Shown piece by piece: positions 2,224 through 54,725 of a DNA stretch of 64,000 nt. Each line of letters begins with the position of its first letter. Within the stretch, counting starts at the first letter, position 1. Under the pieces are notes generated by a model. The model was not told the DNA's origin. It searched no databases and saw only the letters and a list, made by a program, of their open reading frames with translations. The stretch is taken from contig NEEC01000007.1 in assembly GCA_002189035.1 (NCBI GenBank), positions 930,001-994,000 on the forward strand. Direction: 5' to 3'. Made by a program: the position numbers and the translations under genes. This DNA is from Utricularia gibba (taxonomy: Eukaryota > Plantae > Magnoliophyta).

Positions 2224-5052
2224 TAAAGATGATATAATATATTATATATTTAGACGATATTATTTATTTTAATACAATATATTAGAATAATAAGGTGAGG
2301 TTGGCTGGCCCATTGTAATAGGAAGTCCTTGGGATTGGCCCATTGTCAGACACGAGGAGCACAATGCCCAAGGTGGTGCGAATTGAATCGGGTTCGAAGT
2401 CGGACCTCGAGCATGCCCACAAACCCATGATGAAGCTTGGTGATGGATTTGGGTCGGCATTACAGGAGACGACGTTTTGCATGTGCCGGTGCCATCATCT
2501 CGCTAGCCTTGATGCGGAGTGGACTATATATTTAAGCAGTGGACATGAATCCAGTTGTGTAGTGTCCCTGCATCCTGTTTTGGTTGCTGGTTTTCTGCCT
2601 TTGGAAATCTGGTATCTGCCGGCATTTACAGTGCAGTAGCTGGCATAACTGCACAAGGCCAGGCCAAACCAGACCAGTGGGTATTTTAGTTTTTTAAACA
2701 CAGTAAAATACAGTGGGTATTTTTCAAATTAACTCGCCAGACGACCGCACTGGCCCATCGACGACTTCAACTCCTCCACCAACGTCTACAGACTGAGACA
2801 CACTGGGACTCAGACTTCAACTTGATCAAATATATCCGACAAATTCCAATTACATGATAAAGATCATCATCTTAATTACATTAAAAAAGATTAGACTAAA
2901 TATATTATTTCACATTCATTTTTTGATGTGAGATTATTTTAATATTATGAGTTACCCACACCAACCCGCAAGTCCGACCCGGCTTCACATTTATACAATA
3001 AATGTAACCTAATGTATAACTCTGATATCATGATTTGGGATTTGAAAACACAGTTGCCGACATGTTCGAAAAGGCCCTTATCTCTCGCGAGTGGGAATTA
3101 AATAATGCCCGAGGCCAATTATGAATGGGGTGGTTCGGAGTTTACATTGATTAGCAACAACAACACACACCCCTCCTTGCGCTTCTCTGTGAATGAGCTA
3201 CCCATACACCCCTTCAATCATGCACCATGCAGCTCCAAGACTGTGATTACCAGAGGGAGACTCAGAAGCTTTGTGATGTGAATTAGTATGGAACACAGGT
3301 ATCTGGAATTAAATATGATGATGTGATGCAGCTAATCAGATCAGCCCATGGGCGCGCAACCGAAATGGCGACAGGTCTACAGTGAACAGCACCGCACATG
3401 ATGCCCATCTAACAAAGTGCAACCGCATTGGCGACCCATTAATAAGCCGGACAGGAAGCAAAGCAAAGCACCGCTTTAGTGTCCTTTGGAGCAAGAAAAG
3501 TTTGAGGTTGTCAATCAGGAAACGTAAGACCATATGATACCAGTTGCGGGTTCCCCTCCCCAAGATGATTTATTTTACTTACATAGCAAAAACCCTGTTT
3601 GGTATAACTTTTCGAGAGTCATTTCTTATAGAAGTAAGTATTTATGAAGTGAATTTTTTGAGGTTTTTTTGTAAGATAAATCTTCGTACCAAAACTGTTT
3701 TTCGAAACAGAAGTTATTCCATGGAGAGATTGAGTCTCCGTGCATGGAATTCCCGACCCCGCGATCCAACTACGCACATAAATTGGGGACCCGGTGGCAC
3801 ATCAGTCATGTGCTGAACTCCCGATTGGTAGGTACATTGGCAGGCGCAGACCCAGTTGATGCTTATTGAACCCTAGCACGATGTGTTGGAGTAAATTAGT
3901 GATTTTTCCTGACATTTCAACTCAAACTACTAACTACTGCGGGGGGGACCTACTCAGAAAGAAAGTACCCCTCTACAATGGGAGACGAGACCAGACTCAT
4001 GCCACCATATTTTAATAAAAAAAACTTCACCCATTTCACTAAAGCAGTCTAGTTTCCTTCCTAGGAAACGAGAGGGAGAGGAGTGGAGCTGAGGGTGTGC
4101 GGATACCGTCGAGCCGCTCTGGGTTGTGGAGTTGAAAGCTGTGCGTTGGCCTCTGGGGCCGCGGGGACCGGCGGCTTGATGCTGCGAGTCTGGTCAATCC
4201 GCGCAATGAATACGCGCTGCTGCATTTGCCATGAATCCCCCTCTCTTAATTCCTTTTCTTCTTCTATTCACGTCCGTGGATTCTCTTGCACTCCGCACCC
4301 ACCTCCCCTTCTTCCCAACTGTCGACTCTCATTAACACCCACCCTTCACCTACCTTTACACTCTTTTTTTTTTTTTGCAGATTCCTGTATCCAATGCGAC
4401 ATTTTACAAAGACAATATGATTTTTCTTAGAAGAGAATTAGGCATACGAAATAATAATATCGTGTTTGATAGATTTGTTTACGTATCTAAACATTCATAT
4501 ATTGATAACGAAATCTACTTTATAAATATATCTGAAATTAAGAATCTAATAGATAGGATGAACATATAAGTACAAATATACAAGAAAATTAGATTATATT
4601 ATAAAAGATTAGATTTAATTGACTATTAATGATCTATAATTTATTATATATTTGATTATTTTAATTTTATTTTTTAAATTACTTATTCTAATATATATAT
4701 TATGTAATATATTTTTATTTGTAAACGTATATACCAAATATATCATTACTTCACTCAACATAGAGTCTAAAATCTATATTGAAAAAATAAACATATTAAA
4801 TGATAAATTGAGGAATAATGAACCCACGGGTGAAATCATCAATTTTATTTTAAATTATAATTTTTTTTTGGACGACAATTGATTTAAATTTTGCCGTGAT
4901 GTCGTGGCACTCTGAAATAAGGAATGTAGTAAAACTTACACACACCAGTGAAAAGAAAGGCGCTTCTCAGATCAGATGTCCCAGAATACAGACCAGGGAA
5001 AAAGGTGACGTGTACTGTCCAAAAACCTGTCCCAAATCGGAGCCCCAACTGC

Positions 5053-5060
5053 TATAAATA
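5053..5060 (+). promoter_or_regulatory. TATA box of the BAHD gene
   Basis: TATAAATA about 95 nt upstream of ATG 5153. Confidence 0.7.
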
Positions 5061-5152
5061 CACTACACTACAACTAGCTGCATATTGCATTGCAGCCCCT
5101 TGTCGCCATTCACACTTAAGCTTCTAGTTTTACTACTCGGGAGCTCGGCTTC

Positions 5153-7304
5153 ATGGGGATCGAACCGGCCATCCAGGATCTCAATGTCACGGTTCACGAT
5201 TCGTCTCTTGTCTTCCCTGACTTCCAGGTAGACGAGACCAAGTCTCTGTTCTTCTCTAACATTGATCAAGTCCTCAATTTCCATGTTCAAACTCTCCATT
5301 TCTTCCCCCCCAACCCCGATTTCACGCCGGAAGCGGCGGCGGAGAGGCTCAAGAGTGCCCTCCAGAAGGTTATGGTGGAGTACGAGTTCTTGGCCGGGAG
5401 GGTGAAACCGGATCAAGAAACGGGGCGGCTCGAGGTTCAGTACAAGCCTTATGGGGCTGGATTCGTCGTGGCGTCATCTGAGTTCTCTCTTGATGAGATC
5501 GGGGATCTTGTTTATCCCAATCCTGCTTTCATGCAGCTCATCCTCCCTGGATTGAGCAAGTTCGATGATAATCCACTCTGCGTGCTCCAGGTAAACGCTT
5601 TCTTTCAGTTTCTTAGGGAAACTAACACAATTACTGCCTGCTGGGTTCATCCTTTGGTGTGTTCCTTCTGTTTTCATCTATGTTCATAGAGATGGGCTGT
5701 TCATTTATTAGGCGCAGCTGCCATTGAATAGCCGTGTTATCCCACCACCCAACACCAATAATTAAAATTACCAACCAATGTGATATGGTGACCACTTAGA
5801 CCAGTGTGTTGTGGTCCAAATGCTCGTAAAAAAAGGTGAAGAAAACTGGAAACTTGATCACATTTGGTCCCAGATTCATCTTTTCCCCCTCTTTTGCCTT
5901 TCACTCAGGGTTAAGTTTCATCTGTCATTTCTATATGCATCAAAATCTTGACTCCTTGGTGCAACCAGCGTAGGGGAGGTACTAGTCTGGTAGGGTCTGC
6001 CATGATTGCTCATTATTCCAACTTCCTTTTACACTGGATTCATTGGCCGTTTTCTCTATTAAAAAAAGATGATCTTTTTTTTTTTTGTGAGGCTACTCCC
6101 TACAAAAGCTAGTCTAAGAATTAAGTTAATCCCATAACTTGGATTTAAAAGCTAATCATGCAGATGGATCAGCCCATTAGGGGCATTATTTCGCAACTAG
6201 AGTAGAGTAGTGAGCCTATGGATTACCGACTGGCAAAGACTTCTGTCTGTGTGTGTAGGAAAACTTGGAGTTTCGATGATCCCGAGGTTGGGGGAGACAA
6301 AGAAGAGTTGTTAAAATTTTGATCTTACAGAAAGAAGTTTTTTTGTCAGAATGTGAGTGTTGAGGAAGATGAGAAATTTGGGATTGTTTTCTAAAGTCAG
6401 AGTTGTGTTGCAGGTTACATCGTTCAAATGTGGAGGTTTCTGTTTAGGAGTATCGACTAATCATGCTCTGTTCGATGGGATGAGCTTCAAGGTGTTCCTT
6501 CAGAACCTTGGTTCACAAGCATTTAGTGACAGACCATTCCACGTAATACCTTGCCATGATCGCCTCCTTCTCGCCGCCCGGACGCCGCCGCAGGTGACAT
6601 TTGACCATCCCGAGCTGCTAAAGCAACCAGAAGGGGCTGAAAACGCCACCGTCTTTGACTGTAATAAAGAAGAGCTTGATTTCAAGATCTTCCGGCTGAG
6701 CTCTGAAGACATCAATCGGATGAAAGAGACTGCCAAATCTACAAAAACGAAGCCGAACACGAAGTTAACTGGATTCAATCTGATCACAGCCCATGTTTGG
6801 CGCTGCAAAGCACTGTCACGGGATGTGGAGAATAACAGAGAAAGGGAATCAATAGTTCTCTACGCAGTTGATATCAAGCCAAGGATGAATCCTCCATTGC
6901 CAGCTTCTTACTGCGGCAACGCCGTGCTGAGCGCCTACGCGGCGGCGAAATGCTGGGAACTTGAAGTTGAGCCTCTGGCGAAACTGGTTGAGCGTATCAC
7001 TGAAGGGGCGGCAAGGATCACAGATGAGTATGCAAGATCGGCTATCGATTGGGGTGAAATTCACAAGGGATTTCCAAACGGGGAGTTTCTGATTTCGTCT
7101 TGGTGGCGTTTGGGGTTCGATGAAGTTGAGTATCCATGGGGGAAACCCAAGTACAGTTGCCCGGTGGTTTACCGCCGGAGCGATATAATTCTACTTTTTC
7201 CGGATATCGGCGGCGCCACCAGCCAGGGAGTTAATGTTCTGGTTGCACTTCCGCCGAAGGAGATGATCAAGTTTCAATCTTTGTTCAGTTCGTTGTTGGA
7301 GTAA
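5153..7304 (+). CDS. BAHD acyltransferase, GLAUCE-like
   Basis: Exons 5153-5590 and 6414-7304. HXXXD motif (HALFDG), DFGWG-equivalent EYPWGKP, and N-terminal SLFFSNIDQVLNF and IGDLVYPNPAF motifs. Confidence 0.93.
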
Positions 7305-7810
7305 TGGCTTCAAGATTTGTATGTGTACAGGCATATTACATGAACCACAACCCATGCCGCCTAATGTAAGAATAAGAGACAAGATCAGCAGTTTTCCTGT
7401 CTTGGAACTCAGTATCTACTTGTCTATTGCTCAGAACCTTTTTCCCATTCTCTCTTACCAAGTGATGGGAAACAACTCACCAGGAGTAAGTAGCACACAC
7501 AGAGTCCTTTGCTTGAAAATGACAAACAAGGGGAGCTGCGTTACATTAAAAATGCAGCAAAAACAGAGTCTTTTGCTTCAAACTACAAATTCCAGGGCAA
7601 GTTGTTGATACCTTTTTCTTCTCGCAACAAGTCTTTACCAAGAGTCTGCTTGTTTCTTTAAACTAAGAATGCTCTTTATAAACCAAATGAATTGGATTAA
7701 AACACAGAGAAGAGATTAGAAAGAATACAAACAAACCAAAGGGGAGCTCTAATACATATGAGCTCTATTACATCCCAAGGAGTGTAAGAGCACAGCTCTT
7801 TTTCGCGTTC

Positions 7811-8362
7811 CTAGACGTGAAAAGGCAACGACCATCTTCTTCCATTAACATCTCCAACTTTAGCGCTAGAGCCGTTGATCCCCTTTCTCTCCATATAAGC
7901 GTAGTAGTTCAAGAAGAAAGCAAGCGTAAGCACAACCCATTCCAAACAGAACATCACAACGCAGAGCCCCCCTGCAAGTTTCAGAATCACCACACCATCT
8001 TCTTCTCTCACGTAAGATTTCAAGTGATTGAGGAAATCAGAAGGCTTCGTGAATATCAAAACTGAGACGGATCCCTGAAAAATGGCAGTTAAAACAGTAG
8101 CCACCATGTGGGCACCGTAGAACTTTCCGGCAGAGGATGCAGATCTCGCGGCAGCGGCGCAGCCGGAGATCGCCCCGGCAATCGTGATGATGTGGAGAAG
8201 GATTAGGAGAAAGCCGACGAGAGAAGGGATGAGGCGGAGTGAAAGGGTGAGGAAGATGCAACTCGAGGCGGCGCCGAGGAGGATGTAGTTTGTGAGGATG
8301 AAGACTTTGTGGGTGTAGGGATGGGAGCATTCTCCGGCGGAGTAATCGATCGATAAACCCAT
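7811..8362 (-). CDS. Small multi-pass membrane protein (At5g16250/At3g02640-like), copy A
   Basis: Intronless, 183 aa from ATG 8362. Contains NYILLGAASSCIFLTLSLRL and LKSYVREEDG. Paralog of 8979-9545. Confidence 0.9.
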   Translation of the reverse strand: MGLSIDYSAGECSHPYTHKVFILTNYILLGAASSCIFLTLSLRLIPSLVGFLLILLHIITIAGAISGCAAAARSASSAGKFYGAHMVATVLTAIFQGSVSVLIFTKPSDFLNHLKSYVREEDGVVILKLAGGLCVVMFCLEWVVLTLAFFLNYYAYMERKGINGSSAKVGDVNGRRWSLPFHV

Positions 8363-8505
8363 CTTTTTTGGCGGCAGCAAAGAGTAAAAAGAGAATTCAC
8401 TTACTTCCCTCCGAAATTTTGTGAGTTGAGTTTGTGTGTGGTGGGAGAAGGGGAGCTGGGGCGGATATATACACGACGACAGGGGAAGAGTCAAGTTGCA
8501 CAGTG

Positions 8506-8559
8506 TAACGGTCGTATTTCCGACCCGTTGAGATTTGAATGGAACGCGCGTAACGGCTA
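8506..8559 (-). promoter_or_regulatory. Triple MSA-like (AACGG) cassette, copy A promoter
   Basis: TAACGGTC 8506-8513, CCCGTTGAGA 8524-8533, TAACGGCTA 8551-8559. Confidence 0.65.
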
Positions 8560-8809
8560 GTTTATGCCGGTCCGGTGTCCCACATTTTTTAATTTTCCTA
8601 TTTTTTTCATGGATTATTTTTAAAAATTGGAATAATAATATTTTTAATTATTTAAAATTAGAGAATTTTGAAAACTCGAATTGTTTCTAAATTGAACACT
8701 ATATGTTCTATCAAACTCGAATGCTAATGGTTTAATTTGTCAAAAAGGCGTAGGCGTGGGCACGACACGGTGACACGCGAGGAAACTTTTTTTAGGACAC
8801 GCCATGGAG

Positions 8810-8870
8810 TAGCCGTTATGCTTCCATTCACAATTTGAAATTCCACAACGGGTCGAAATATAGCCGTTGC
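8810..8870 (+). promoter_or_regulatory. Triple MSA-like (AACGG) cassette, copy B promoter
   Basis: TAGCCGTTA 8810-8818, CCACAACGGGTC 8843-8854, TAGCCGTTGC 8861-8870. Same order and orientation relative to the gene as in copy A. Confidence 0.65.
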
Positions 8871-8978
8871 ACTCTGAAACTCTGCCATGGGTATATTATA
8901 TAGACTCTTGTTCTTATTCTGCTTCTTCTTCATAATCACTACCGTTTTCAGAGATAGAAATTCGAAGCTCCTCCGAAA

Positions 8979-9545
8979 ATGGGTTTATCTATGGATTACT
9001 CCGCCGGGGAATGCTCCCATCCACACACCCACAAAATCTTCATGCTCACAAACTACGTCCTCCTTGGCGCCGCCTCAAGCTGCATCTTCCTCACCCTCTC
9101 CCTCCGACTCTTCCCCTCCCTCGTCGGCTTCCTCCTGATCCTCCTCCACATCATCACAATCGCCGGCGCCGTCTCCGGCTGCGCCGCCGCCTCGCGCTCC
9201 GCTACGTCTGCAGGAAAATTCTACGGCGCCCACATGGTGGCAACTGTTTTAACCGCCATTTTTCAGGGATCCGTCTCTGTTTTGATATTCACGAGGCCGT
9301 CTGATTTTCTTGCTCACTTGAAATCGTACGTGAGGGAAGAAGATGGTGTGGTGATTCTGAAACTTGCAGGGGGACTCTGCGTCGCCATGTTCTGTTTAGA
9401 ATGGGTTGTGCTTACCCTTGCTTTCTTCCTGAATTACTACGCCTACATGGAGAGAAAGGGGATCAACAGCGGGAACACGAATCGGGCGAAAGCTGGAGAT
9501 GTGGAGGAGGATATCAGAAACTGGCCATGGCCTTTTCAGGTCTGA
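8979..9545 (+). CDS. Small multi-pass membrane protein (At5g16250/At3g02640-like), copy B
   Basis: Intronless 188-aa ORF ending in the family-type C-terminus WPWPFQV. Inverted paralog of 7811-8362. Confidence 0.92.
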   Translation: MGLSMDYSAGECSHPHTHKIFMLTNYVLLGAASSCIFLTLSLRLFPSLVGFLLILLHIITIAGAVSGCAAASRSATSAGKFYGAHMVATVLTAIFQGSVSVLIFTRPSDFLAHLKSYVREEDGVVILKLAGGLCVAMFCLEWVVLTLAFFLNYYAYMERKGINSGNTNRAKAGDVEEDIRNWPWPFQV

Positions 9546-10083
9546 AGTCAACGAAAAGAGGCTGCTTTTTACTGTATTACTACAGCTTCTTTAGAATTCC
9601 GGTGTTTTTCTTGTACCCCGTGTTCATTTGGTTTCCAATGAACGAAGAACATTCTCTGTAGTCCGATCTCGCGGCGGCCGGAGTATGAACCGATCAAAAT
9701 CGAATCTATGAGCTGCTGCATGCAGAACATGTTTGAGTTTCCCTCCAAACCTAACCTAATTCATATTTTAACATTTTTTTACCTTATTAATAAAAAATGT
9801 AATTTATATTAATTTTCTCATTAGAACCTTTATGGTAACAAATCTTCGATATGAATCTAAAACTGAACTGGCGAATTCTCGCACGTGGGAAAATAAAATT
9901 AAAAGGCGATATTGGGAGCAGATTTATTATCTGAATGATTAGATAGTATTTTATTTATAGTGATTTAGGAAATAAAAATCTTATCTGTGCACATTGCTTC
10001 TGGTGATCAGATGCGCTAGTTCCTATATATATATTTGGAATGAAGGCGGACCTTTTTTCAGGCGTGCTCTCTTCAACGATTTC

Positions 10084-10647
10084 ATGGCGGGAAGCAAAGA
10101 GGATCAGTGGAGTGCGATCTCAGTCACTCCGACAAAGTTTGTGCTCCGTCGTTCTCCGGTTTCGAATCACGGTGCCGAGATGGGAGGAGAAACGGAGGGT
10201 CCTCGTCGTTTGAACGGCGTTCCGGTTTACAACAAGGAGATGCTGGAAGCGGCGACAACCTTAATGCTCCTTCGTAATGGATTCTTTGGCGGTAAGAAGG
10301 ATTTTGATACTCCAGATATGGTGGAGGCGGCTGAGTCCCTAGTCACGTTACAGAATGGTGACCAAAGCGAGAACCGTGTGAAAAAACCTCTCCCCAACAA
10401 TGGGAGCGTTACGAGGGTTTTGGGAGAGAACAAGGTTTATACCTGCAAGGAGTGTGGGGAAGTGTTCAAGACGCCTCAGGCGCTCGGAGGTCATATGACG
10501 AAGCACCGAAAAGAAAAAAGCAACGCGACGGAAGTTGTGAAAGATGACAAGAAACGAAAGATGGAGAATGTAGGAAGCACACCAAATGGCGGCAGCGAGT
10601 CTGATGCTCCTGTTGATTTAGACTTGAAATTGGGTTCTTTGTATTAG
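10084..10647 (+). CDS. Single C2H2 (QALGGH) zinc-finger repressor with C-terminal EAR motif
   Basis: CKECGEVFKTPQALGGHMTKH finger and DLDLKL EAR motif. ATG 10084 follows a TATA-like tract at 10023-10034. Confidence 0.88.
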   Translation: MAGSKEDQWSAISVTPTKFVLRRSPVSNHGAEMGGETEGPRRLNGVPVYNKEMLEAATTLMLLRNGFFGGKKDFDTPDMVEAAESLVTLQNGDQSENRVKKPLPNNGSVTRVLGENKVYTCKECGEVFKTPQALGGHMTKHRKEKSNATEVVKDDKKRKMENVGSTPNGGSESDAPVDLDLKLGSLY

Positions 10648-11053
10648 AGCACATACTGTTTTCATGCAATGTTCTTGTAATGTCTCTGATAAACATATGC
10701 AAAAGCTTTGGAATCTCTCTCAATATTTGTTATTCTGAAAACTCCCGAGTCTCTGAAAGTATAGCCATGTTTTCTTCACGATGGGGTTTTTGATGTTTAC
10801 TGTCTGTGAAGTGGGAAATGAGAAGAAAAGCCGCAGTGACCTTTCCCCTGCACGCACAAATTTCACGTCCAGGATTTGCAGCAGCTGCTCGTGAATGAAT
10901 GATGCAAAGAACATAATGTGTTACACTCTGCTTCATCATGCATGGCGTCACTTGTGTGCTTCAAAATCCTTGATTTGTTGCTGCTGCTGCTGCTCTGCTG
11001 TGCCACAGGGCTCAGGGGACATGGTCTTCTCTCTGTGCTTAGGGGCCGTATAA

Positions 11054-11091
11054 TGGGCTTCCACCTGAATCATTAAAGCCCATAAGGCCCA
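11054..11091. promoter_or_regulatory. Site II (TGGGCY) cluster upstream of DEG10
   Basis: TGGGCT 11054, AGCCCA 11078, GGCCCA 11086. Confidence 0.55.
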
Positions 11092-11162
11092 GCGCTTCAG
11101 TTTCCCCCTTTCAGGTACGTCTTCTACAGCGCCTCATTGCAGGTTTCAGCTTTATTGGCGAG

Positions 11163-14022
<2,860 letters not shown>

Positions 14023-43527: not shown

Positions 43528-43703
43528 GAAAAATAGTTTGGGAAAATAATAAATTAATATTCTCCGAATTTTGAGGGAAAATATTGATCTTCTTGGTTCT
43601 TGCTGGGTGTCGTTTCCCCGTTCTTCTGAATTGTCCCACGTCTGTGAACCCCTCTCTGATCCCGTGCTCCATGGAGTGATTTTCTCAGTGTGATCAGTTG
43701 TTA

Positions 43704-46316
43704 ATGGAGCCTGGAGGGGATGAGGACAAGGAAATGGAGGACGCTGAAGGGGAGCTGGAGCAATAGAGAATGAGTCTGGCGATGAGTCGCATTCTCTGGA
43801 CAAGGATGACATCGAGGAGGAGGAGGAAGAAGAAGAGAATCCTGAGGTACGTGGTTTACTGGATGCGATTGGGGTTGGGAGTTTCTGAATCAAGATTAGT
43901 TTTCTTTTTCTACTCCCTGATTCTTCCCGCTTTTGAGAAAAAAAAAGTTAAACTTCTACTGGTGCACTTCGTCTGATTATGTGTTTAATTCTCATGATTT
44001 TTTTTTTTTCCATCAACGTAGGAACCGCTAACAGAAGAGGAGATTGAAGAACTTATTGCTGAGCTCTTAGGAATTGAGAGCAAGGTACAAATTGTCTTTC
44101 TTTCTGCTCTACTATTGTTAAGTATGGGAAAGAGAAAATATTTTTCATTCAATTTTCTCACAATCGTATATCTTATGTAGGCTGCGGAAGCACAAGAGGC
44201 ACTGGAGGAGGAATCCCTGGCGAAAATAGAGGCTGATGTTAGGAAGGAATTATCTGAATCTCTCTCTGGTGATGAAGTAAATGATCCTTTTTTTTAAGTC
44301 TGTCACATCCTTGCAAGCTGATCCGGCATTTCTGAAAATTCCATAAAGCCATTGTGCTTGTTCTACAGTTGGATAAAGCTGTTGAATTGGAGATGACTAC
44401 ATTCAAGCAACAGTGGGAGTCCGAACTTGACGAGCTTGAGACAGAGAGTGCCCATTTATTGGTATTCTTGATATCTACGCTTACTGAAATTCTGTAGTGA
44501 ATCTTGAAAGGCAAAGATGCGACTGCTTCTCTTTTTCGTATTCCTGGTACTGATCATTATCACTCTTTTTGTTCACCTTCCCTCTTGTGCAGGAACAACT
44601 TGACGGTGCTGGTATTGAGCTTCCCAGCCTCTATAAGTGGATTGAAAGACAAGTTCCGAATGGTTGTGTCACTGAAGCCTGGAAGAATAGAGCCCACTGG
44701 GTTGGGGCGCAAGTTCCTTCTGATGCTGTTGAATCTGTAGAAAAGGCTGAGGAATATTTAAAGGCCCACAGGCCTGTGAGAAGGTTCATCTACGTGTCCC
44801 ATAAAAATATGATTTATGTGTGGTTTGCAATGTGGTTCCTTAACTTGGAATCATTTCGTAGTGCAGGCGGCATGGGAAAATTTTGGAGGAAGGTGCTGGT
44901 GGTTTTTTGGGAAGAAAAGTTGCAACCAGTGAAAGCAGCAGCATTCCTAATGATGCTGCGGATTTGGATTGGGATTCTTTCAATAAATTGTGTTCTGATA
45001 GGTCGACATCTTTGGAAGGCATTGCTTTTGGAAATAAACACTGGGCTTCTGTATACCAAGCAAGCACGCCACAGCAGGCAGCTGAATTGGGTCTACAGTT
45101 TTTGGGAGTTAATGAGGTGAATGTTTTAGATTCCGTTTGTCAATTTACTCCTTCCACTGGAATGATTATTACATGCGGTATCTTGCATGCCACCATATAT
45201 TCCTCAAAATTTGAAAAGTGCTTCAGGTGGAAGAGATTGATGATCTTGATGGCACTTCAAGTAATCCATTTATTGCTGAAGCCATAGAAAATGAAAAAAG
45301 TCTTGGTCTTACTGAAGAACAAAAGAAAAACTTTAAAAAGGTTGGTTACTGAGTATAATTCAATTGTTTTAACTTAACCTTCAGTTGTTCCTTTGTTCTT
45401 CATATGCAAATAAATATAATTCAATTGTTTCTTGCAGGTAAAAGAGGAAGAAGATGCAAATGATGACCAAAAACTATGTAAACGATTGAAAAGAAGGAGA
45501 TTCCAGAAGAAATCTGAAGTGGTCTCTAAGGATTTTTATTATTCCTTTTTTTTCGTATTGATCCTATGTCTTCATTTCTATGACTCTCTGTTTCTTTCTT
45601 TTTTTTTTCAGAGTGCTAATCTTGAAGGGTTTCCTTCGCTTATGAGCTCATGGAAAGTCTACGAGATGATTCTATGTCTCTTAAAGATGAAACTTCTGAA
45701 GATGGTGTTGGAAATGAAAAAGATAGAACAGTTGATGAGTTAAAGGGGGTCAAGCTTTCTAGTGATTGTGACCAAGTAGATGAAAACAATTGTGAAAATA
45801 ACCTGCATACCGATGATGAGGCCCCAGCTGATGGAACTAATTTGGAAACTGAGGGTACCACATTGGGCACTCAATTTACCTCAAGTTCAGATTCCGATTC
45901 TGATGATTCAGATGATTCGGATGCAGAAAATGATGTCAAGGCCAGGTTAACTCAATATCTCAGATTTTGATTTTATTTTAGTTTCAACTCTATGCGTTTT
46001 ACTCTGAATGTCAGATGGCCCTTGTAGATTTTTTTTTTTTTTCTCATAGCACTATTTTGGCATCTATTCATTAATCCGTTAGCATTTAGGTTAATGACAG
46101 GTAATAATAACGTTATTAATCATAGTCATATAATAAAATTGACAGCAACTATATGCCAATGGTGACAATTTCCCCTAGAACAATCTTATTTTTTTACAAT
46201 TAAATAAATCCATGACCTCTGAATTGTGAGGATCTAAGAGATGATGGTCATATGGTTCACATATATGGCAGCTTCCTGTGTAAATGTTATTGCAGGCACT
46301 TCCTGTTATTGGATCT

Positions 46317-46348
<32 letters not shown>

Positions 46349-49300
46349 GTAAATGTTATACTTATGCTGCATTGTTTAACGTCTTTGTCATCTGAAAGAA
46401 GATTTGCCTGGATTTAATGATTGGCTGAAGCTGTGTTGTCTTATTTTGTTATTTCACTTGTGTCCAGTGCCAAGAGAAGACGTAAAAAGAAAATACGGAG
46501 GATCATTGATGATGCGGAGTTAGGTGAAGAAACAAAAAAGAAAATTGCAATTGAAAAAGTAAACTCAACATACTCTGCTGTATATTTTATCAAATTAATG
46601 ATTCATCTTGCGTATATTTTAATCTTCTTACAGGAACGTCAAGAACGCCTAAAATCTCTGGAGGCGAAGTTTTCTGTCAATTCTGTCACGATGAGTTCTA
46701 CCGTGAGTAATGGTGGCTCATTTGATGGCAATGGTGTTGAAATACTGGGAGACGTTTCTGCAGGATATATAATAAACGTGGTAAGGGAGGAAGGTGAAGA
46801 GGCTGTGAGGATTCCTCCTAGCATCTCTTCCAAATTAAAGCCCCATCAGGTGCATGAAATCTTTTTTTTTTTTTTTTTTTGACGTTGTGCATCTTTGATC
46901 ATGTTCAGCTGGATTAGGTAATAGGAAAGCATTTTTATATTGTATTCTAATTAACCTTCACCCCACGTATTGCATTGTTGGTTGGCCTGACATTATGTAC
47001 TTTCTATAGATCAGAGGCATAAGATTTATGTGGGAGAATATTATACAATCTGTGAGAAAAGCAAGGTCTGGTGATAAAGGTCTCGGTTGCATTCTAGCTC
47101 ATAATATGGGCTTGGGGAAAACTTTTCAGGTAGAAATCCTTAACCCTATCAAAACTTCTATTGAACCCATGTTTTTCGATGTATGTGATGCAACTGTCTG
47201 GAATATTTGTTTATATGGTATTCTGTTTATTACATAGTTTCTTCATTACAATTCAACATCTCAACCTTATTTTAGCTAGTTTCTGGAAATCTAGTAATGC
47301 TATGATGTGGGTTTTTTATGTTCGTGGTTTTTTCATTTAACCATCTCTTTAGTTTCCAAGGTTTTCAATTTCGTGTATATAGGTTATTGCTTTTCTCTAC
47401 ACGGCTATGAGGGGTGTGGACGTAGGTTTAAGGACAGCTCTTATTGTGACTCCAGTGAGTGTAATACACAACTGGCGACGTGAGTTCATGAAGTGGAAAC
47501 CATGTGAGCTTAAGCCACTTCGTATCTTCATGCTTGAGGACGTTCCAAGGTATATTTTTCGTCCTATTGTTTTATTAGAGTTAAATGGCATGTGTAAATT
47601 TGAGCTAGAACTCGTGAAGTTATTCTTCACTGCATTGACGACATTACCTTTCTATTTTAGGGAGAGAAGGCTTAATTTGCTCAGAAAGTGGGTGACTAAA
47701 GGTGGTATCTTCTTAATTGGATATACTTCCTTTCGGAATTTATCATTTGGGAAGTATGTCAAGGACCGGGATGTGGCTAGGGAAATCAGCCGGGCTCTTC
47801 AGGTAGTTAAATTATTTTGCATGATAGTCTTTCATGTTTATGGAAGGCAGTCTTATTTCTCCACCGCTTACTGGATTTGGTAATAAAGTGTGTGGAATAG
47901 ACTTACATAATTCAAAGCTGAGCAACTATGCTGCATGTCCCCAGAACGTTTTTTTGTGGCCCTGTTTAAAAAAAAATGCTTACACTTTAAGGTCATTTTT
48001 GGTAGGATGGGCCTGATATTTTAGTATGTGACGAAGCACACACTATAAAGAATACCAGGGCTGATACTACCCAGGCATTAAAACTGGTAAAATGTCAGCG
48101 GAGGATTGCACTTACAGGATCTCCTCTGCAGAACAATCTGATGGAATACTATTGTGTATGGATTTCTGTAATACTCAGTATTTGATATCTTTAACACACA
48201 GTTGATCTTCTTGAGTTTTTTTTTTTTTTTGTTACAGATGGTAGATTTTGTTCGTGAAGGGTTTCTTGGCAGCAGCCATGAGTTCAGGAACCGGTAATGG
48301 ACAGTTTTTTTTTTTCTTTAACATGCCAATTTGGTGTTGTTTTCACCTTTTGTAATAAACATTTCTTCAGATTCCAGAACCCAATAGAAAATGGGCAACA
48401 CACAAACTCTACAGCTGAAGATGTGAAAATAATGAATCAAAGATCTCACATACTGTATGAGCAGCTCAAGGGTTTTGTTCAGAGGATGGATATGAATGTG
48501 ATTAAGAAAGATTTACCTCCCAAGACTGTATTTGTTATCTCAGTGAAACTCTCTCCATTACAGAGACAACTTTACAAGAGATTTCTTGATGTTCATTGTT
48601 TTACCAAGGACAAAATCTCAGGTGAAAGGATGATTAAGAGATCTTTTTTTGCTGGCTACCAGGCCTTAGCTCAGGTATATGCATCAGTAATTCATTTGAA
48701 GTTCGGTTTGCCCATCTTTATTGTTTAGTGTGGAAAACTAAAACATATTTTCTACGAGTTTTTTAGCTTTTTCATTTTGCATTTCCATTTCCCAGGACGT
48801 TACCACGTCTACTGATTCATTCTCTGTAGATAATGTACAAATTAAAATCTTTTTGCGGCGAGGGGCTTAATGGATGTTAACTTTGTGAAATGCTGTTTAA
48901 TGACCATGAAAACTTTGGGATTGGCACTATTCACTATCATCAATAGATGCAGGATTGACCTGCTAAAATGCCCTCGCAGATTTGGAACCATCCTGGTATT
49001 CTGCAATTGAGGAAACAAAGCAAAGATGTTGCGAAGTGTGAAGATTTTGAAAATGGTCTGGCAGATGATAGCCCAAGTGAAGAGAATGCTGACTTTAATA
49101 TGATCCCTGGAGGTACTTGCACTTAGTCTATTTGAACAAAGTGTTCTGTTTAATTTGTCTTCGGCGCGTTCTGGCACTTTATTTTAGTTTGGGTAATCTC
49201 GTGCCTTTCTATGTCATTATATTAGTTTCCATTATGTTCAATTTTCATTTGCTCTTCTCAATTTATACCGTTTCAGAAAAGATTGTCAATCCACAAAAGA

Positions 49301-51175
49301 AAAATGATGAGGGATTTCTCCGTGAGGTTTGTGAACTTTCTACCCTCACCATCAAATGCTCTTGGTATTTTATGCTAGATTCTCTTTTTTTTTTTTCTTA
49401 AGTGCTTTCTTTTATGGCTTCTACCAGTAGCCAACATTTTATCTGATTCTTCTACTAGGATTGGTGGATTGATCTTCTCGCTGAAAATACTTATAAGGAT
49501 GCTGATCAAGGCGGCAAAATGGTCTTGCTACTTGATATTCTCACTATGTGTGCAAAAATTGGTGATAAGGCACTGGTATTTAGCCAAAGTATTCTAACAT
49601 TGGACCTAATTGAAATTTACCTTTCAAAGATGCCTCGTCCTAGGAAGAAAGGAAAATGCTGGAAAAAAGGGAAGGACTGGTACAGGTGCATTGATAAAGT
49701 TGCTTTTGTGGCATGCGATGTTTTGATTTCTTGTAAAAATCTTTCTGATTTTAAATTCATAATGACTGGATCAAGTAGGGATGCAATATTTTTGTGATGA
49801 TGGTATGATGTTGGAATATGGTTGAGCTTTTTTGATGTGATCTAACATGACAAGTTTATGCATCATCAGACTAGATGGAAGAACTGAAAGCTCTGAGAGG
49901 CAACGACTGGTCGAGAGGTTCAATGAACCATCCAACATAAGAGTAAAATGTACTTTGATATCAACGAGGGCCGGATCATTGGGAATTAACTTTCATGCCG
50001 CAAATCGAGTGATAATTGTTGATGGCTCTTGGAACCCAACATACGACCTTCAGGCTATATACAGAGCTTGGAGGTGCGGAGGCTTTCTCTTGATTCTGGG
50101 AAACCAATATTTTCCATTTGAGCATTTGGTAAATTTTGATCCCCATACCTTTGCAGATATGGACAGACAAAGCCGGTCTTTGCTTACCGACTATTAGCCC
50201 ATGCCACTATGGAAGAGAAAATTTATAAGCGTCAGGTATGAGAACATAGTGTTGATTTCCACCGGTTTCTCTCCTGCATTCAGCTAAGGAAGGATTCTGC
50301 AGGTCACCAAGGAAGGCCTTGCAGCGAGGGTAGTAGATAGACAGCAGGTGCATAGAACAATGTCAAAAGAAGAAATACTGCATCTGTTTGAATTTGGTGA
50401 CGATGAAAGCACTGACATACTGCCTGAGCTCGGACCGGAGACTGGAGTCATTACTGAAGCGAATCCAATTTGCCATGTTGGACATTTTCTGAAGCAAAAT
50501 CTGCCACTCACTCAAGGAAGTTCCCCCTCGGATAAACTAATGGAAACTTTGATATGCAATTATCATCCCAGGTTGAAGAATATGATCAGTTTTGATCCTA
50601 TGATCAACTTTCACTGATATGCATTTATATCACTATGGTCATTATGCTTTTTCATGCTTCTGTGCAGGTGGATTCTGAATTACCATGAGCATGAGACACT
50701 GCTACAAGAAAACGAGGACGAGAAACTGTCCAAGGAAGAGCAGGACCTGGCGTGGGAAGTCTACAGGAAAACATTGGAATGGGAGGTAGGACAAAGTGCA
50801 CCAGAAGCCACTGCAGCAGAGCACACTAAAGTCCCTCCACAAGAATCTGCTCATCCCCCGTCACCACAACAACCGGAACCTGTGGCTGATCAAAATGCTG
50901 ATGTTCCATGCACACAAGTTTCTACGAGTGACGAACAGCTCGAATGGATCCGTAGACGCCATCAATCTCGTTACAGTATCCAGTTTTGCACAGATTTTTC
51001 ACACTTAATGGTGTTGCAAACACAAAGAATACCGAGAGATGGGTTCGCAGTCTGTGGAGAATGCGCCAAAGTGATTCGCTGGGAGCATGTGACCGGAGCT
51101 CCCGGGTTAGCCTGCTATCTATCTTCAGGTTTCCATCCGCCACCTCCTGAAATGGTTATGCAGCAGATATCATGA
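43704..51175 (+). CDS. ATRX: ATRX-like SNF2 chromatin remodeller (CHR20), apparently lacking the ADD domain
   Basis: About 24 exons. Plant ATRX N-terminus ([25 protein letters not shown]; [11 protein letters not shown]), [14 protein letters not shown], Walker [15 protein letters not shown], helicase-C [20 protein letters not shown]-terminal [12 protein letters not shown]. Apparent -1 indels at 43749-43752 and 45627-45629. Confidence 0.93.
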
Positions 51176-52469: not shown

Positions 52470-54725
52470 ATGGACGAGAAATCAAGGGTTGCTAAGGCTT
52501 TCAAGGGTATGAAAAGTATAGGAATTGGTGCACAAGCAGTAAAACCAGTATTAAAGAGACTGCTGAATTTATATGGTGACATGGAGTTTATTGAGCTAGA
52601 CAATTATCGTGTTCTTGTCGATGCCATTTTTGAGGATGAAGCCAATGATGAGCACAGAGAGCCTCTGATAAAAAAACAGCGTAGAATATTTGACGAGGGT
52701 CGGGCTACAAGTCTCCGTCGCAATGGAAAAGATGTTGTGGATTTTAAAGATGACATTTTAGGCAATCTTGTTGATGAAATCGAAAATGAGGGAGGGTCAT
52801 TGCCGATAGATCCTGGGACTAGCTCTGCAAATCATCAGCAAACTGGACACAGAACCATCTGTGATTTGGCAACTTCTACTTGTGGGAAAGCAAAAATCTC
52901 TTTAAAATGTGATCACAGCCTTCAGCAGAAAAGCATCTACATTGCTTGTGCTACAGAATTCTTGAAGAATGCAGAAAAACAATGCACATTCAGTGTAAAT
53001 TCTGGGGATCAGTTCTGTGTAGCTAGATTATTGAAGGAAATATGTGAATGTTACTTGTCACTTGGGCACAAAGCTGCAGGAGATGGAGAAATCTTAAATG
53101 CTGCAGATTGTATTGAAGATGATACAGAGAAAATGGTTTTGGCCGATAGTAGATTACCTGTTTCATGTGCGACGGGGAAAACTGCACAATTGCAAGTTTC
53201 TAGTACTCAGAAGAAAAAGGTATTTCACAGAATCAATGACATAGCCAAAGGGACTGAGAAAGTGAAGATTTCTCTTCTCGATGAAGTAGGCAATACGAAT
53301 CTGCCTGATTTTACGTATATCCCAGTTAACATCATTTATGAATATGCTTACGTGTGTTTTTCATTAGCTCGTATAGCATATGAGGATTGCTGTTCTGGTT
53401 GTAAAGGGGACTGTCTCACATCCTTGATACCGTGTGCATGTTCTCGTGAAACTGGCGGAGAATTTGCTTATACTTCTGAAGGTCTACTAAAGGAAAAGTT
53501 TCTTCAACATTGGACGTCTATGAAACTCTCGCTAGAAACTCAGTACATACACTACTGTCAAGATTGCCCACTAGAGCGAGCCAAAAGTTCCAAGAGCCCA
53601 AAGAAATGCAAGGGACACTTCTTGAGGAAGTTCATTAAGGAGTGTTGGAGCAAATGTGGCTGCAGCATGCAGTGTGGAAATCGAGTCGTTCAACGAGGAA
53701 TCACAAGAAAATTGCAGGTCAGCAATGTAGGAATACGTTCTTCCCCAGCACCATTTGCTGACAAATGATATTGCTTCTCAGGTCTTTTTAACGAGCGAAA
53801 ATAAAGGTTGGGGACTGAGGACACTTGAAGAGTTGCCAAAAGGAAGCTTTGTTTGTGAATATGTTGGGGAGATTTTAACCAATATAGAACTATATGAAAG
53901 GAACAACAAAAGCTCTAGTCAAGACAAGCATACATATCCAGTGTTACTTGATGCAGATTGGGCAACAGAGGGTGTTCTCAAAGATGAAGACGCTCTTTGC
54001 TTGGATGCAACTCGTTATGGAAATGTGGCAAGGTTCATCAATCATCGGTATGCATCTATCTACAATGAATAATTAAACAACATAATAGACTCATTCAAGT
54101 GTTTTGTGTTGTTTTGTTAATATTTTGCCGAACCCCCATACAACACTAGTCACTTATTTCTCAACCTTGTGCTTGGCTATAGGTGCTTTGATGGAAACTT
54201 GATTGAGATCCCAGTAGAAGTTGAGACTCCAGATCGACATTACTATCATGTGAGAAGGGTTTAACCTAATTATTTACTTCCCCTTACAAAACAATTAACG
54301 ATGAACAAAACCTGAACCTTATGCTTGCTTACAATTGCTTAATCAGCTGGCTTTCTTCACCCAAAGAAAAGTGAAGGCTTTTGAAGAGCTTACCTGGGTA
54401 AGTAAAGCATAGACCTCTTTTTCACTTTTTAAATCTTGGATCACAACCTCCCATCCTTGAATTCTGGAAGGAAATGGGAAACAAATATGTTCTTTAAAAT
54501 TGACTTATACCCTTGATCCCCCACTCCCCCCATTCTTATATGATATGGTTGTGCCCAGCTACACTCTTTTACACTAGAGGGATTCATGCATGAATACCCA
54601 AGTCTTATTATAGCATGGCTTCATTACAGGATTACTCAATTGATTTTGAGGACAAAGAGCATCCCATTGAGGCATTCAGATGCAACTGTGGGAGCCAGTA
54701 CTGTAGAGACAAGAGGTATAACTAA
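52470..54725 (+). CDS. SUVR-family histone H3K9 methyltransferase (WIYLD, pre-SET, SET, post-SET), SUVR4-like
   Basis: Exons 52470-53717, 53782-54047, 54183-54249, 54347-54397, 54630-54725; the 3' end could splice further. WIYLD-like N-terminus, Cys-rich pre-SET, GWGLRTLE, RFINHRC, ELTWDY, CNCGSQYC. Confidence 0.9.

Follow-up and report, generated by a model that had tools for sequence, protein, structure and literature searches.

A 64,000-nucleotide (nt) stretch of the Utricularia gibba genome (GenBank assembly GCA_002189035.1, contig NEEC01000007.1, positions 930,001 to 994,000 of the forward strand; hereafter the window, whose own coordinates are used throughout) contains an expressed ATRX gene whose product has no ADD domain. 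The canonical combination of an ADD with a SNF2 motor is confirmed to be absent from this protein. We consider it very probable that the gene is an otherwise ordinary ortholog of ATRX (CHROMATIN REMODELING 20, CHR20) that lost its ADD through one ancestral deletion in Lamiales.

In animals, the ADD brings ATRX to chromatin marked by H3K9me3 and H3K4me0, and mutations in this domain cause ATR-X syndrome. A large plant order without an ADD, together with independent repeats of the same loss in other plants, amounts to a natural domain deletion. This raises the question of what the plant ADD contributes to H3.3 deposition, which could be addressed by comparing Lamiales (Mimulus/Erythranthe, Antirrhinum, Sesamum, Salvia) with Arabidopsis or tomato.

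An expressed ATRX gene without the ADD domain

The gene occupies approximately 43.6-51.2 kb of the window on the + strand and has 24 coding exons, which run from a start codon at 43704 to a stop codon at 51173-51175 and specify a product of 1361 amino acids (aa). All 23 introns are of the GT..AG type. The gene model combines joints observed in RNA with four 3' introns placed by homology, and tblastn searches with ATRX of Perilla, Kingdonia and Riccia agree with it. Stop-to-stop open reading frames (ORFs) in the three + frames include the N-terminal exons, the exon flagged in a first-pass annotation of the sequence as reading straight past the ADD, and the exons for KKKIRRI, SNF2 and Helicase_C; none of the ORFs between the ATRX exons in these frames was cysteine-rich. 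The N-terminal exons are 57-75% identical, exon by exon, to Perilla ATRX, and when exon 44874-45117 was searched against a library of 1.84 billion representatives, all matches were plant ATRX proteins and fragments. The spliced protein has both the plant-specific conserved N-terminal region and the basic segment that precedes the SNF2 domain. Pfam matches to SNF2-rel_dom and Helicase_C were found on the exon ORFs, and the spliced product carries GLGKT, DEAH, LTGSPLQNN and the motif V/VI region.

By tree and exon similarity, this is the same gene as Arabidopsis ATRX/CHR20 (AT1G08600) and its orthologs outside Lamiales. It has in common with the Arabidopsis type the N-terminal region, a Ser/Asp patch, the basic segment, the SNF2 and Helicase_C lobes, and a C-terminal Cys motif, but lacks about 150 residues that include the whole ADD and the intron that splits it.

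RNA from nine sequencing runs of the same organism covers the region, and contigs of four runs from three studies were aligned on 43600-49550. The contigs cover exons from 43603 onward and represent a single spliced form with GT..AG introns. The exon order in RNA is 45438-45521, 45612-45945, 46468-46558 and 46634-46849, and the direct joint 45945|46468 occurs in all four runs. In contigs of 4.2-4.4 kb (the longest being 4358 nt), the recorded coordinates leave no space for an extra exon among the first three of these exons.

Could the missing domain be a technical artefact, i.e., an assembly collapse near 45.88 kb, or else the mark of a decaying pseudogene? The window sequence is indeed frameshifted at 43748 and 45626, and as deposited these sites would disrupt the ATRX coding sequence. 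However, the RNA contigs are collinear with the exon and restore an open 1361-aa frame with one extra G per site, and orthologs share the architecture. Every covering contig has the extra G at both sites, and the assembly is therefore one base short there; with the two missing G restored, the spliced translation is open throughout. Contig-level RNA data, within their limits, exclude both an assembly collapse and a hidden exon, and we consider an artefact or a decaying pseudogene highly improbable.

The domain was searched for with a profile derived from 89 plant ADD segments, to which the spliced protein had no match; this protein contains only five Cys in its first 470 residues. When the 89 segments were compared with the window by tblastn, the best E value was approximately 0.02, which is at chance level, and no hit fell within the ATRX gene; a profile search without filters, run on all six-frame ORFs of the window, gave a best E value of 0.1. 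The same profile search served for positive controls and returned two exon matches, of 50-55 and 123-132 bits, in each of the Cinchona, Anisodus and Kingdonia loci. The Cinchona segment that is the counterpart of the missing part matches the human ATRX ADD (2JM1, 2LBM, 3QL9) with an E value of about 1e-12 over both fingers and the helix; what is missing is thus a genuine ADD. The human domain is homologous to the ADD of ADD-bearing plants and has no counterpart in the window protein. Two tyrosines that we take to be part of the human K9me3 pocket align with non-aromatic residues of the plant ADD.

A scan with the Pfam ADD_ATRX model (PF17981) was dropped as a presence test. Plant ATRX proteins that have an ADD score 20-33 bits with this model, around its cut-off of 25.7 bits, and Cinchona ATRX, whose ADD is obvious, had no PF17981 match at E<=0.1. 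The 89-segment profile was used instead. Routine domain annotation is unable to separate ADD-bearing from ADD-less plant ATRX, and because ADD_ATRX barely detects plant ADDs, domain tables are silent on the loss.

These data bear on most of the first-pass annotation, which had been made from the sequence alone. Its identification of the gene as ATRX is supported by the tree and by exon-by-exon similarity, and its intact SNF2 motor by the two Pfam domains and their motifs. The absence of the ADD, with the flagged exon reading straight through, holds in the RNA joint and in the empty profile and tblastn searches, and the confirmation in RNA that it had called for is provided by the joint found in every run. 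Its reading of the flagged exon was right from 45627 on and out of frame upstream, where one G is missing after 45626, and the downstream exon begins at 46468, as set by the RNA joint, not near 46448.

Anatomy and spread of the deletion

The layout of ADD-bearing genes is identical in Cinchona (Gentianales), Anisodus (Solanales) and Kingdonia (Ranunculales), in which the ADD is split over two exons. The first carries a variable acidic region and a GATA-like finger, and the second a PHD finger, a C-terminal helix, a linker of about 15 residues and the Ser/Asp patch. The conserved intron between the two fingers lies just 5' of a DxDCSECYCGWCG motif. In the window, Paulownia and Genlisea, a single exon passes from the variable region directly into the linker and the Ser/Asp patch. 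Missing along with one intron are approximately 150 codons, which encode the pre-ADD spacer, the two fingers (GATA-like and PHD) and the C-terminal helix. A comparison of this fused exon with the two-exon layout indicates that the in-frame event removed the intron together with the adjoining parts of both exons, 3' in the first and 5' in the second.

A MAFFT alignment with the ADD-bearing orthologs of Cinchona, Nicotiana, Hibiscus syriacus, Durio and Nepenthes places the junction at about 45.83 kb, and the linker of about 15 residues before SSSDSD is kept. The deletion had been located in the same exon from the sequence alone, but near 45.88 kb; the retained linker moves it upstream. The view that it is a clean in-frame genomic deletion, with no ADD remnant in the flanking introns, agrees with the tblastn and profile searches.

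Perilla ATRX, the closest full-length match to the window protein, likewise has no ADD. Protein searches were carried out with the Perilla N-terminus, the Cinchona ADD and the C-terminal 870 aa of Sesamum ATRX. The Perilla and Sesamum queries retrieved ATRX of 19 Lamiales genera, all without ADD, including Perilla, Salvia, Phlomoides, Paulownia, Sesamum, Primulina, Dorcoceras, Rehmannia and Penstemon, as well as Orobanche, Striga, Castilleja, Phtheirospermum, Handroanthus, Andrographis, Buddleja, Erythranthe and Genlisea. Among the retrieved proteins, 213 were 800 aa or longer, and 163 of these had a clear ADD. It was missing from all of the approximately 40 Lamiales proteins; the remaining ADD-less sequences were five from Hibiscus and Dionaea, a Brassica fragment, and two more that are taken to be non-ATRX. 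The segment between KVKEEDD and KKKIRR measures 61-197 aa with 0-4 Cys in Lamiales, whereas it measures 261-340 aa with 17-24 Cys elsewhere. Lamiales ATRX proteins are mostly 1200-1430 aa long, and those of other eudicots mostly about 1430-1520 aa. With the exception of Dionaea and some Hibiscus copies, sampled ATRX proteins of other orders retain the ADD.

An annotation error in the other Lamiales is made unlikely by the Paulownia, Rehmannia and Genlisea ATRX loci, in which tblastn and profile searches found no ADD-coding DNA. One Rehmannia glutinosa model (P0089), which scored 27 bits over the whole ADD profile with most of the Cys replaced, was considered as a degenerate ADD relic and rejected. 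Its ADD-like stretch is made of pieces of 5-19 residues distributed over about 6 kb of the locus (approximately 5300-11600), and the locus has no contiguous ADD similarity. Homology-guided prediction with an ADD-bearing reference probably created these pseudo-ADD micro-exons.

We further placed the window protein in a maximum likelihood tree of 72 sequences, which was obtained by a quick IQ-TREE search with the Shimodaira-Hasegawa-like approximate likelihood ratio test (SH-aLRT), not full bootstrap. All 29 Lamiales sequences in the tree form one clade (SH-aLRT 100), which is entirely ADD-less, and the window protein is sister to that of Genlisea aurea (SH-aLRT 100), with 83% identity, a position indicative of Lentibulariaceae. 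ADD-bearing proteins derived from Logan group with Gentianales, Ericales, Apiales or rosids, not beside Lamiales. The Lamiales clade holds two paralog subclades. Both are ADD-less, the fused exon was found in both, and their gap boundaries coincide.

One subclade contains Paulownia-1, Rehmannia, Erythranthe, Perilla and Salvia, and the other Gesneriaceae, Penstemon, Buddleja, Andrographis, Genlisea with the window, Sesamum, Paulownia-2 and Orobanchaceae. For Genlisea and the window, only the second type was seen. The arrangement of the two subclades suggests an old duplication that would have followed the loss of the ADD.

The spread of the deletion bears on a proposal of the first-pass annotation, namely that the loss of a heterochromatin reader would be a special adaptation of a miniature, repeat-poor genome with little heterochromatin. 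The gene is compact (7.5 kb, versus 42-51 kb in Cinchona and Anisodus), and its nearest relative is Genlisea, both of which are in keeping with such an adaptation. Yet Paulownia, Rehmannia, Phlomoides, Striga, Orobanche, Salvia, Sesamum and Primulina, among others, carry this deletion too, and several ADD-less Lamiales have long genes and more than 100 Mb of assembled sequence. Since the deletion is common to Lamiales with long genes and large assemblies, the loss is older than genome miniaturization in Lentibulariaceae. We give a lineage-specific adaptation next to no credence. Every ATRX retrieved from the 19 genera has the same architecture; a like absence of the ADD from orthologs throughout the group is what the first-pass annotation itself had named as a refutation. 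ADD-less ATRX is the normal gene of its order, and the window alone is ordinary.

Outside Lamiales, an ADD-less ATRX with an in-frame fused exon is present in Dionaea muscipula (locus 8129-8431) and Hibiscus trionum (locus 4915-5373), and a profile search found no ADD-coding DNA in either locus. In the tree, Dionaea and the ADD-less Hibiscus copies sit beside ADD-bearing Nepenthes and Hibiscus syriacus. The lesion in D. muscipula and in H. trionum and H. sabdariffa is of the same type as that of the window but has different breakpoints, and in Hibiscus the junction differs in each of three copies, while H. syriacus retains the ADD. Because the clades are unrelated and the breakpoints differ, the Dionaea and Hibiscus losses are independent of that in Lamiales. 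The occurrence of ADD-less copies next to ADD-bearing relatives makes in-frame ADD loss recurrent in plants.

Probable origin and possible consequences of the loss

A single ancestral deletion would have occurred in the ancestor of at least Gesneriaceae and the remaining core Lamiales. It would have cut the 3' end of the exon for the GATA-like finger, the inter-finger intron and the 5' part of the PHD/helix exon, and the resulting in-frame fused exon would have passed to all sampled descendants in both paralog subclades. The protein still has its plant-specific N-terminal region and the basic KKKIRRI segment, and its SNF2 motor is complete. Arabidopsis ATRX is reported to act as an H3.3 chaperone (PMC12607251; PMC10980423). 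Most likely, the ADD-less protein is still an ATP-dependent remodeler and H3.3 chaperone, and its targeting may proceed via the retained N-terminal region and partner proteins, not a built-in histone-tail reader. One candidate partner is LHP1, with which ATRX is said, by the title of a 2018 Mol Plant article by Wang et al. (cited in PMC10980423), to interact through plant-specific domains.

Several points weigh against this reading. No named protein of Oleaceae or other early-branching Lamiales appeared in the searches with the Perilla N-terminus, Cinchona ADD and Sesamum C-terminus, and thus the node of loss is not fixed. A single deletion before Gesneriaceae split from the other sampled families is the parsimonious choice, but the flanks of the deletion are poorly conserved, and independent deletions clearly do occur elsewhere (Hibiscus, Dionaea). 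RNA support rests on contig assemblies, from which rare isoforms drop out. The data above establish the deletion, its expression and its spread over the phylogeny; retention of function, which we infer along with partner-based targeting, rests on the open frame, conservation and expression.

A different possibility is that the ADD is now encoded by a separate gene in Lamiales and joins ATRX as a partner. Insects offer a precedent: Drosophila XNP, which works with the separate dADD1, is, like C. elegans XNP-1, a SNF2 motor of the ATRX subfamily without an ADD (PMC12607251). The ADD-less motor is common to these proteins and to that of the window, and the animal events are independent. In Drosophila, the ADD persists in the partner gene, whereas we found no ADD-like sequence in the 64 kb searched in this genome or in the single loci of three other Lamiales. 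The protein search with the ADD query spanned 809-2574 aa only, a range that a short stand-alone ADD protein would escape. A search of the protein atlas with the ADD gave a single stand-alone ADD cluster, from arthropods, the rest being generic PHD clusters. The lesion has the form of a simple internal deletion rather than a fission. We regard such a split as decidedly unlikely, and retain a single ancestral deletion as the preferred explanation.

Only tentatively, we would extend this explanation to a broader one: that Lamiales as an order (Gesneriaceae and core) lost the ADD long ago, that the loss has recurred independently elsewhere (in Dionaea and, at least two times, in Hibiscus), and that targeting has been rewired. 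If this were true, the ADD reader would be dispensable for the essential work of plant ATRX, and Lamiales ATRX would be directed to its sites by a separate ADD-like or other reader protein, or by partners such as LHP1. From the estimated age of Lamiales, tens of millions of years have passed without the ADD. A literature search found no paper linking ATRX with Lamiales, and the top-ranked papers on Utricularia, Genlisea, Sesamum, Mimulus and Salvia did not mention ATRX. The order-wide loss may therefore be unreported, though the protein models are public.

Features of the locus and neighboring gene

Coordinates of the ATRX gene, its parts and two sites at which the assembly is one G short are given below.

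Table 1. Features of the U. gibba ATRX locus (window coordinates)
Feature	Position	Strand	Evidence
ATRX/CHR20 gene	43603..51175	+	RNA contigs, open frame, tblastn
Exons 1-8, plant-specific N-terminal region retained	43704..45521	+	Exon search, identity to Perilla
Fused exon 9: acidic variable region, post-ADD linker, Ser/Asp patch	45612..45945	+	One RNA contig piece covers 45612-45941
Zone with the deletion junction	45820..45885	+	MAFFT alignment
Intron 9, 522 nt, GT..AG, without ADD remnant	45946..46467	+	Joint in four runs; tblastn and profile searches empty
Exon 10, basic KKKIRRI segment preceding the SNF2 domain	46468..46558	+	RNA joint, ORF
Exons 12-22, SNF2 ATPase lobes (SNF2-rel_dom, Helicase_C) intact	47010..50235	+	Pfam on exon ORFs, motifs in spliced translation
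Assembly one G short in a G run	43748	+	Extra G in the three runs whose contigs cover the site (X1, X2, X6)
Assembly one G short in a G run (GGG versus GGGG)	45626	+	Extra G in all four runs

At four exon positions (45467, 45641, 45707 and 45787), the contig of run X5, which belongs to another study, does not match the window, and run X6 has one of these differences. They probably represent accession-level polymorphism, and the open frame is kept. One X6 contig stops at 46544 and continues as a run of A within the A-rich stretch that codes for KKKIAIEK; this looks like internal priming or premature polyadenylation and not a true 3' end.

The product of the next gene downstream of ATRX (52470-54700, + strand) has a WIYLD domain at its N-terminus (E value 9e-17), and pre-SET and SET motifs were recognized by eye in the ORFs that follow. 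From these motifs, it looks like a putative SUVR-type histone methyltransferase. We take the adjacency of a second chromatin gene to ATRX as a coincidence.

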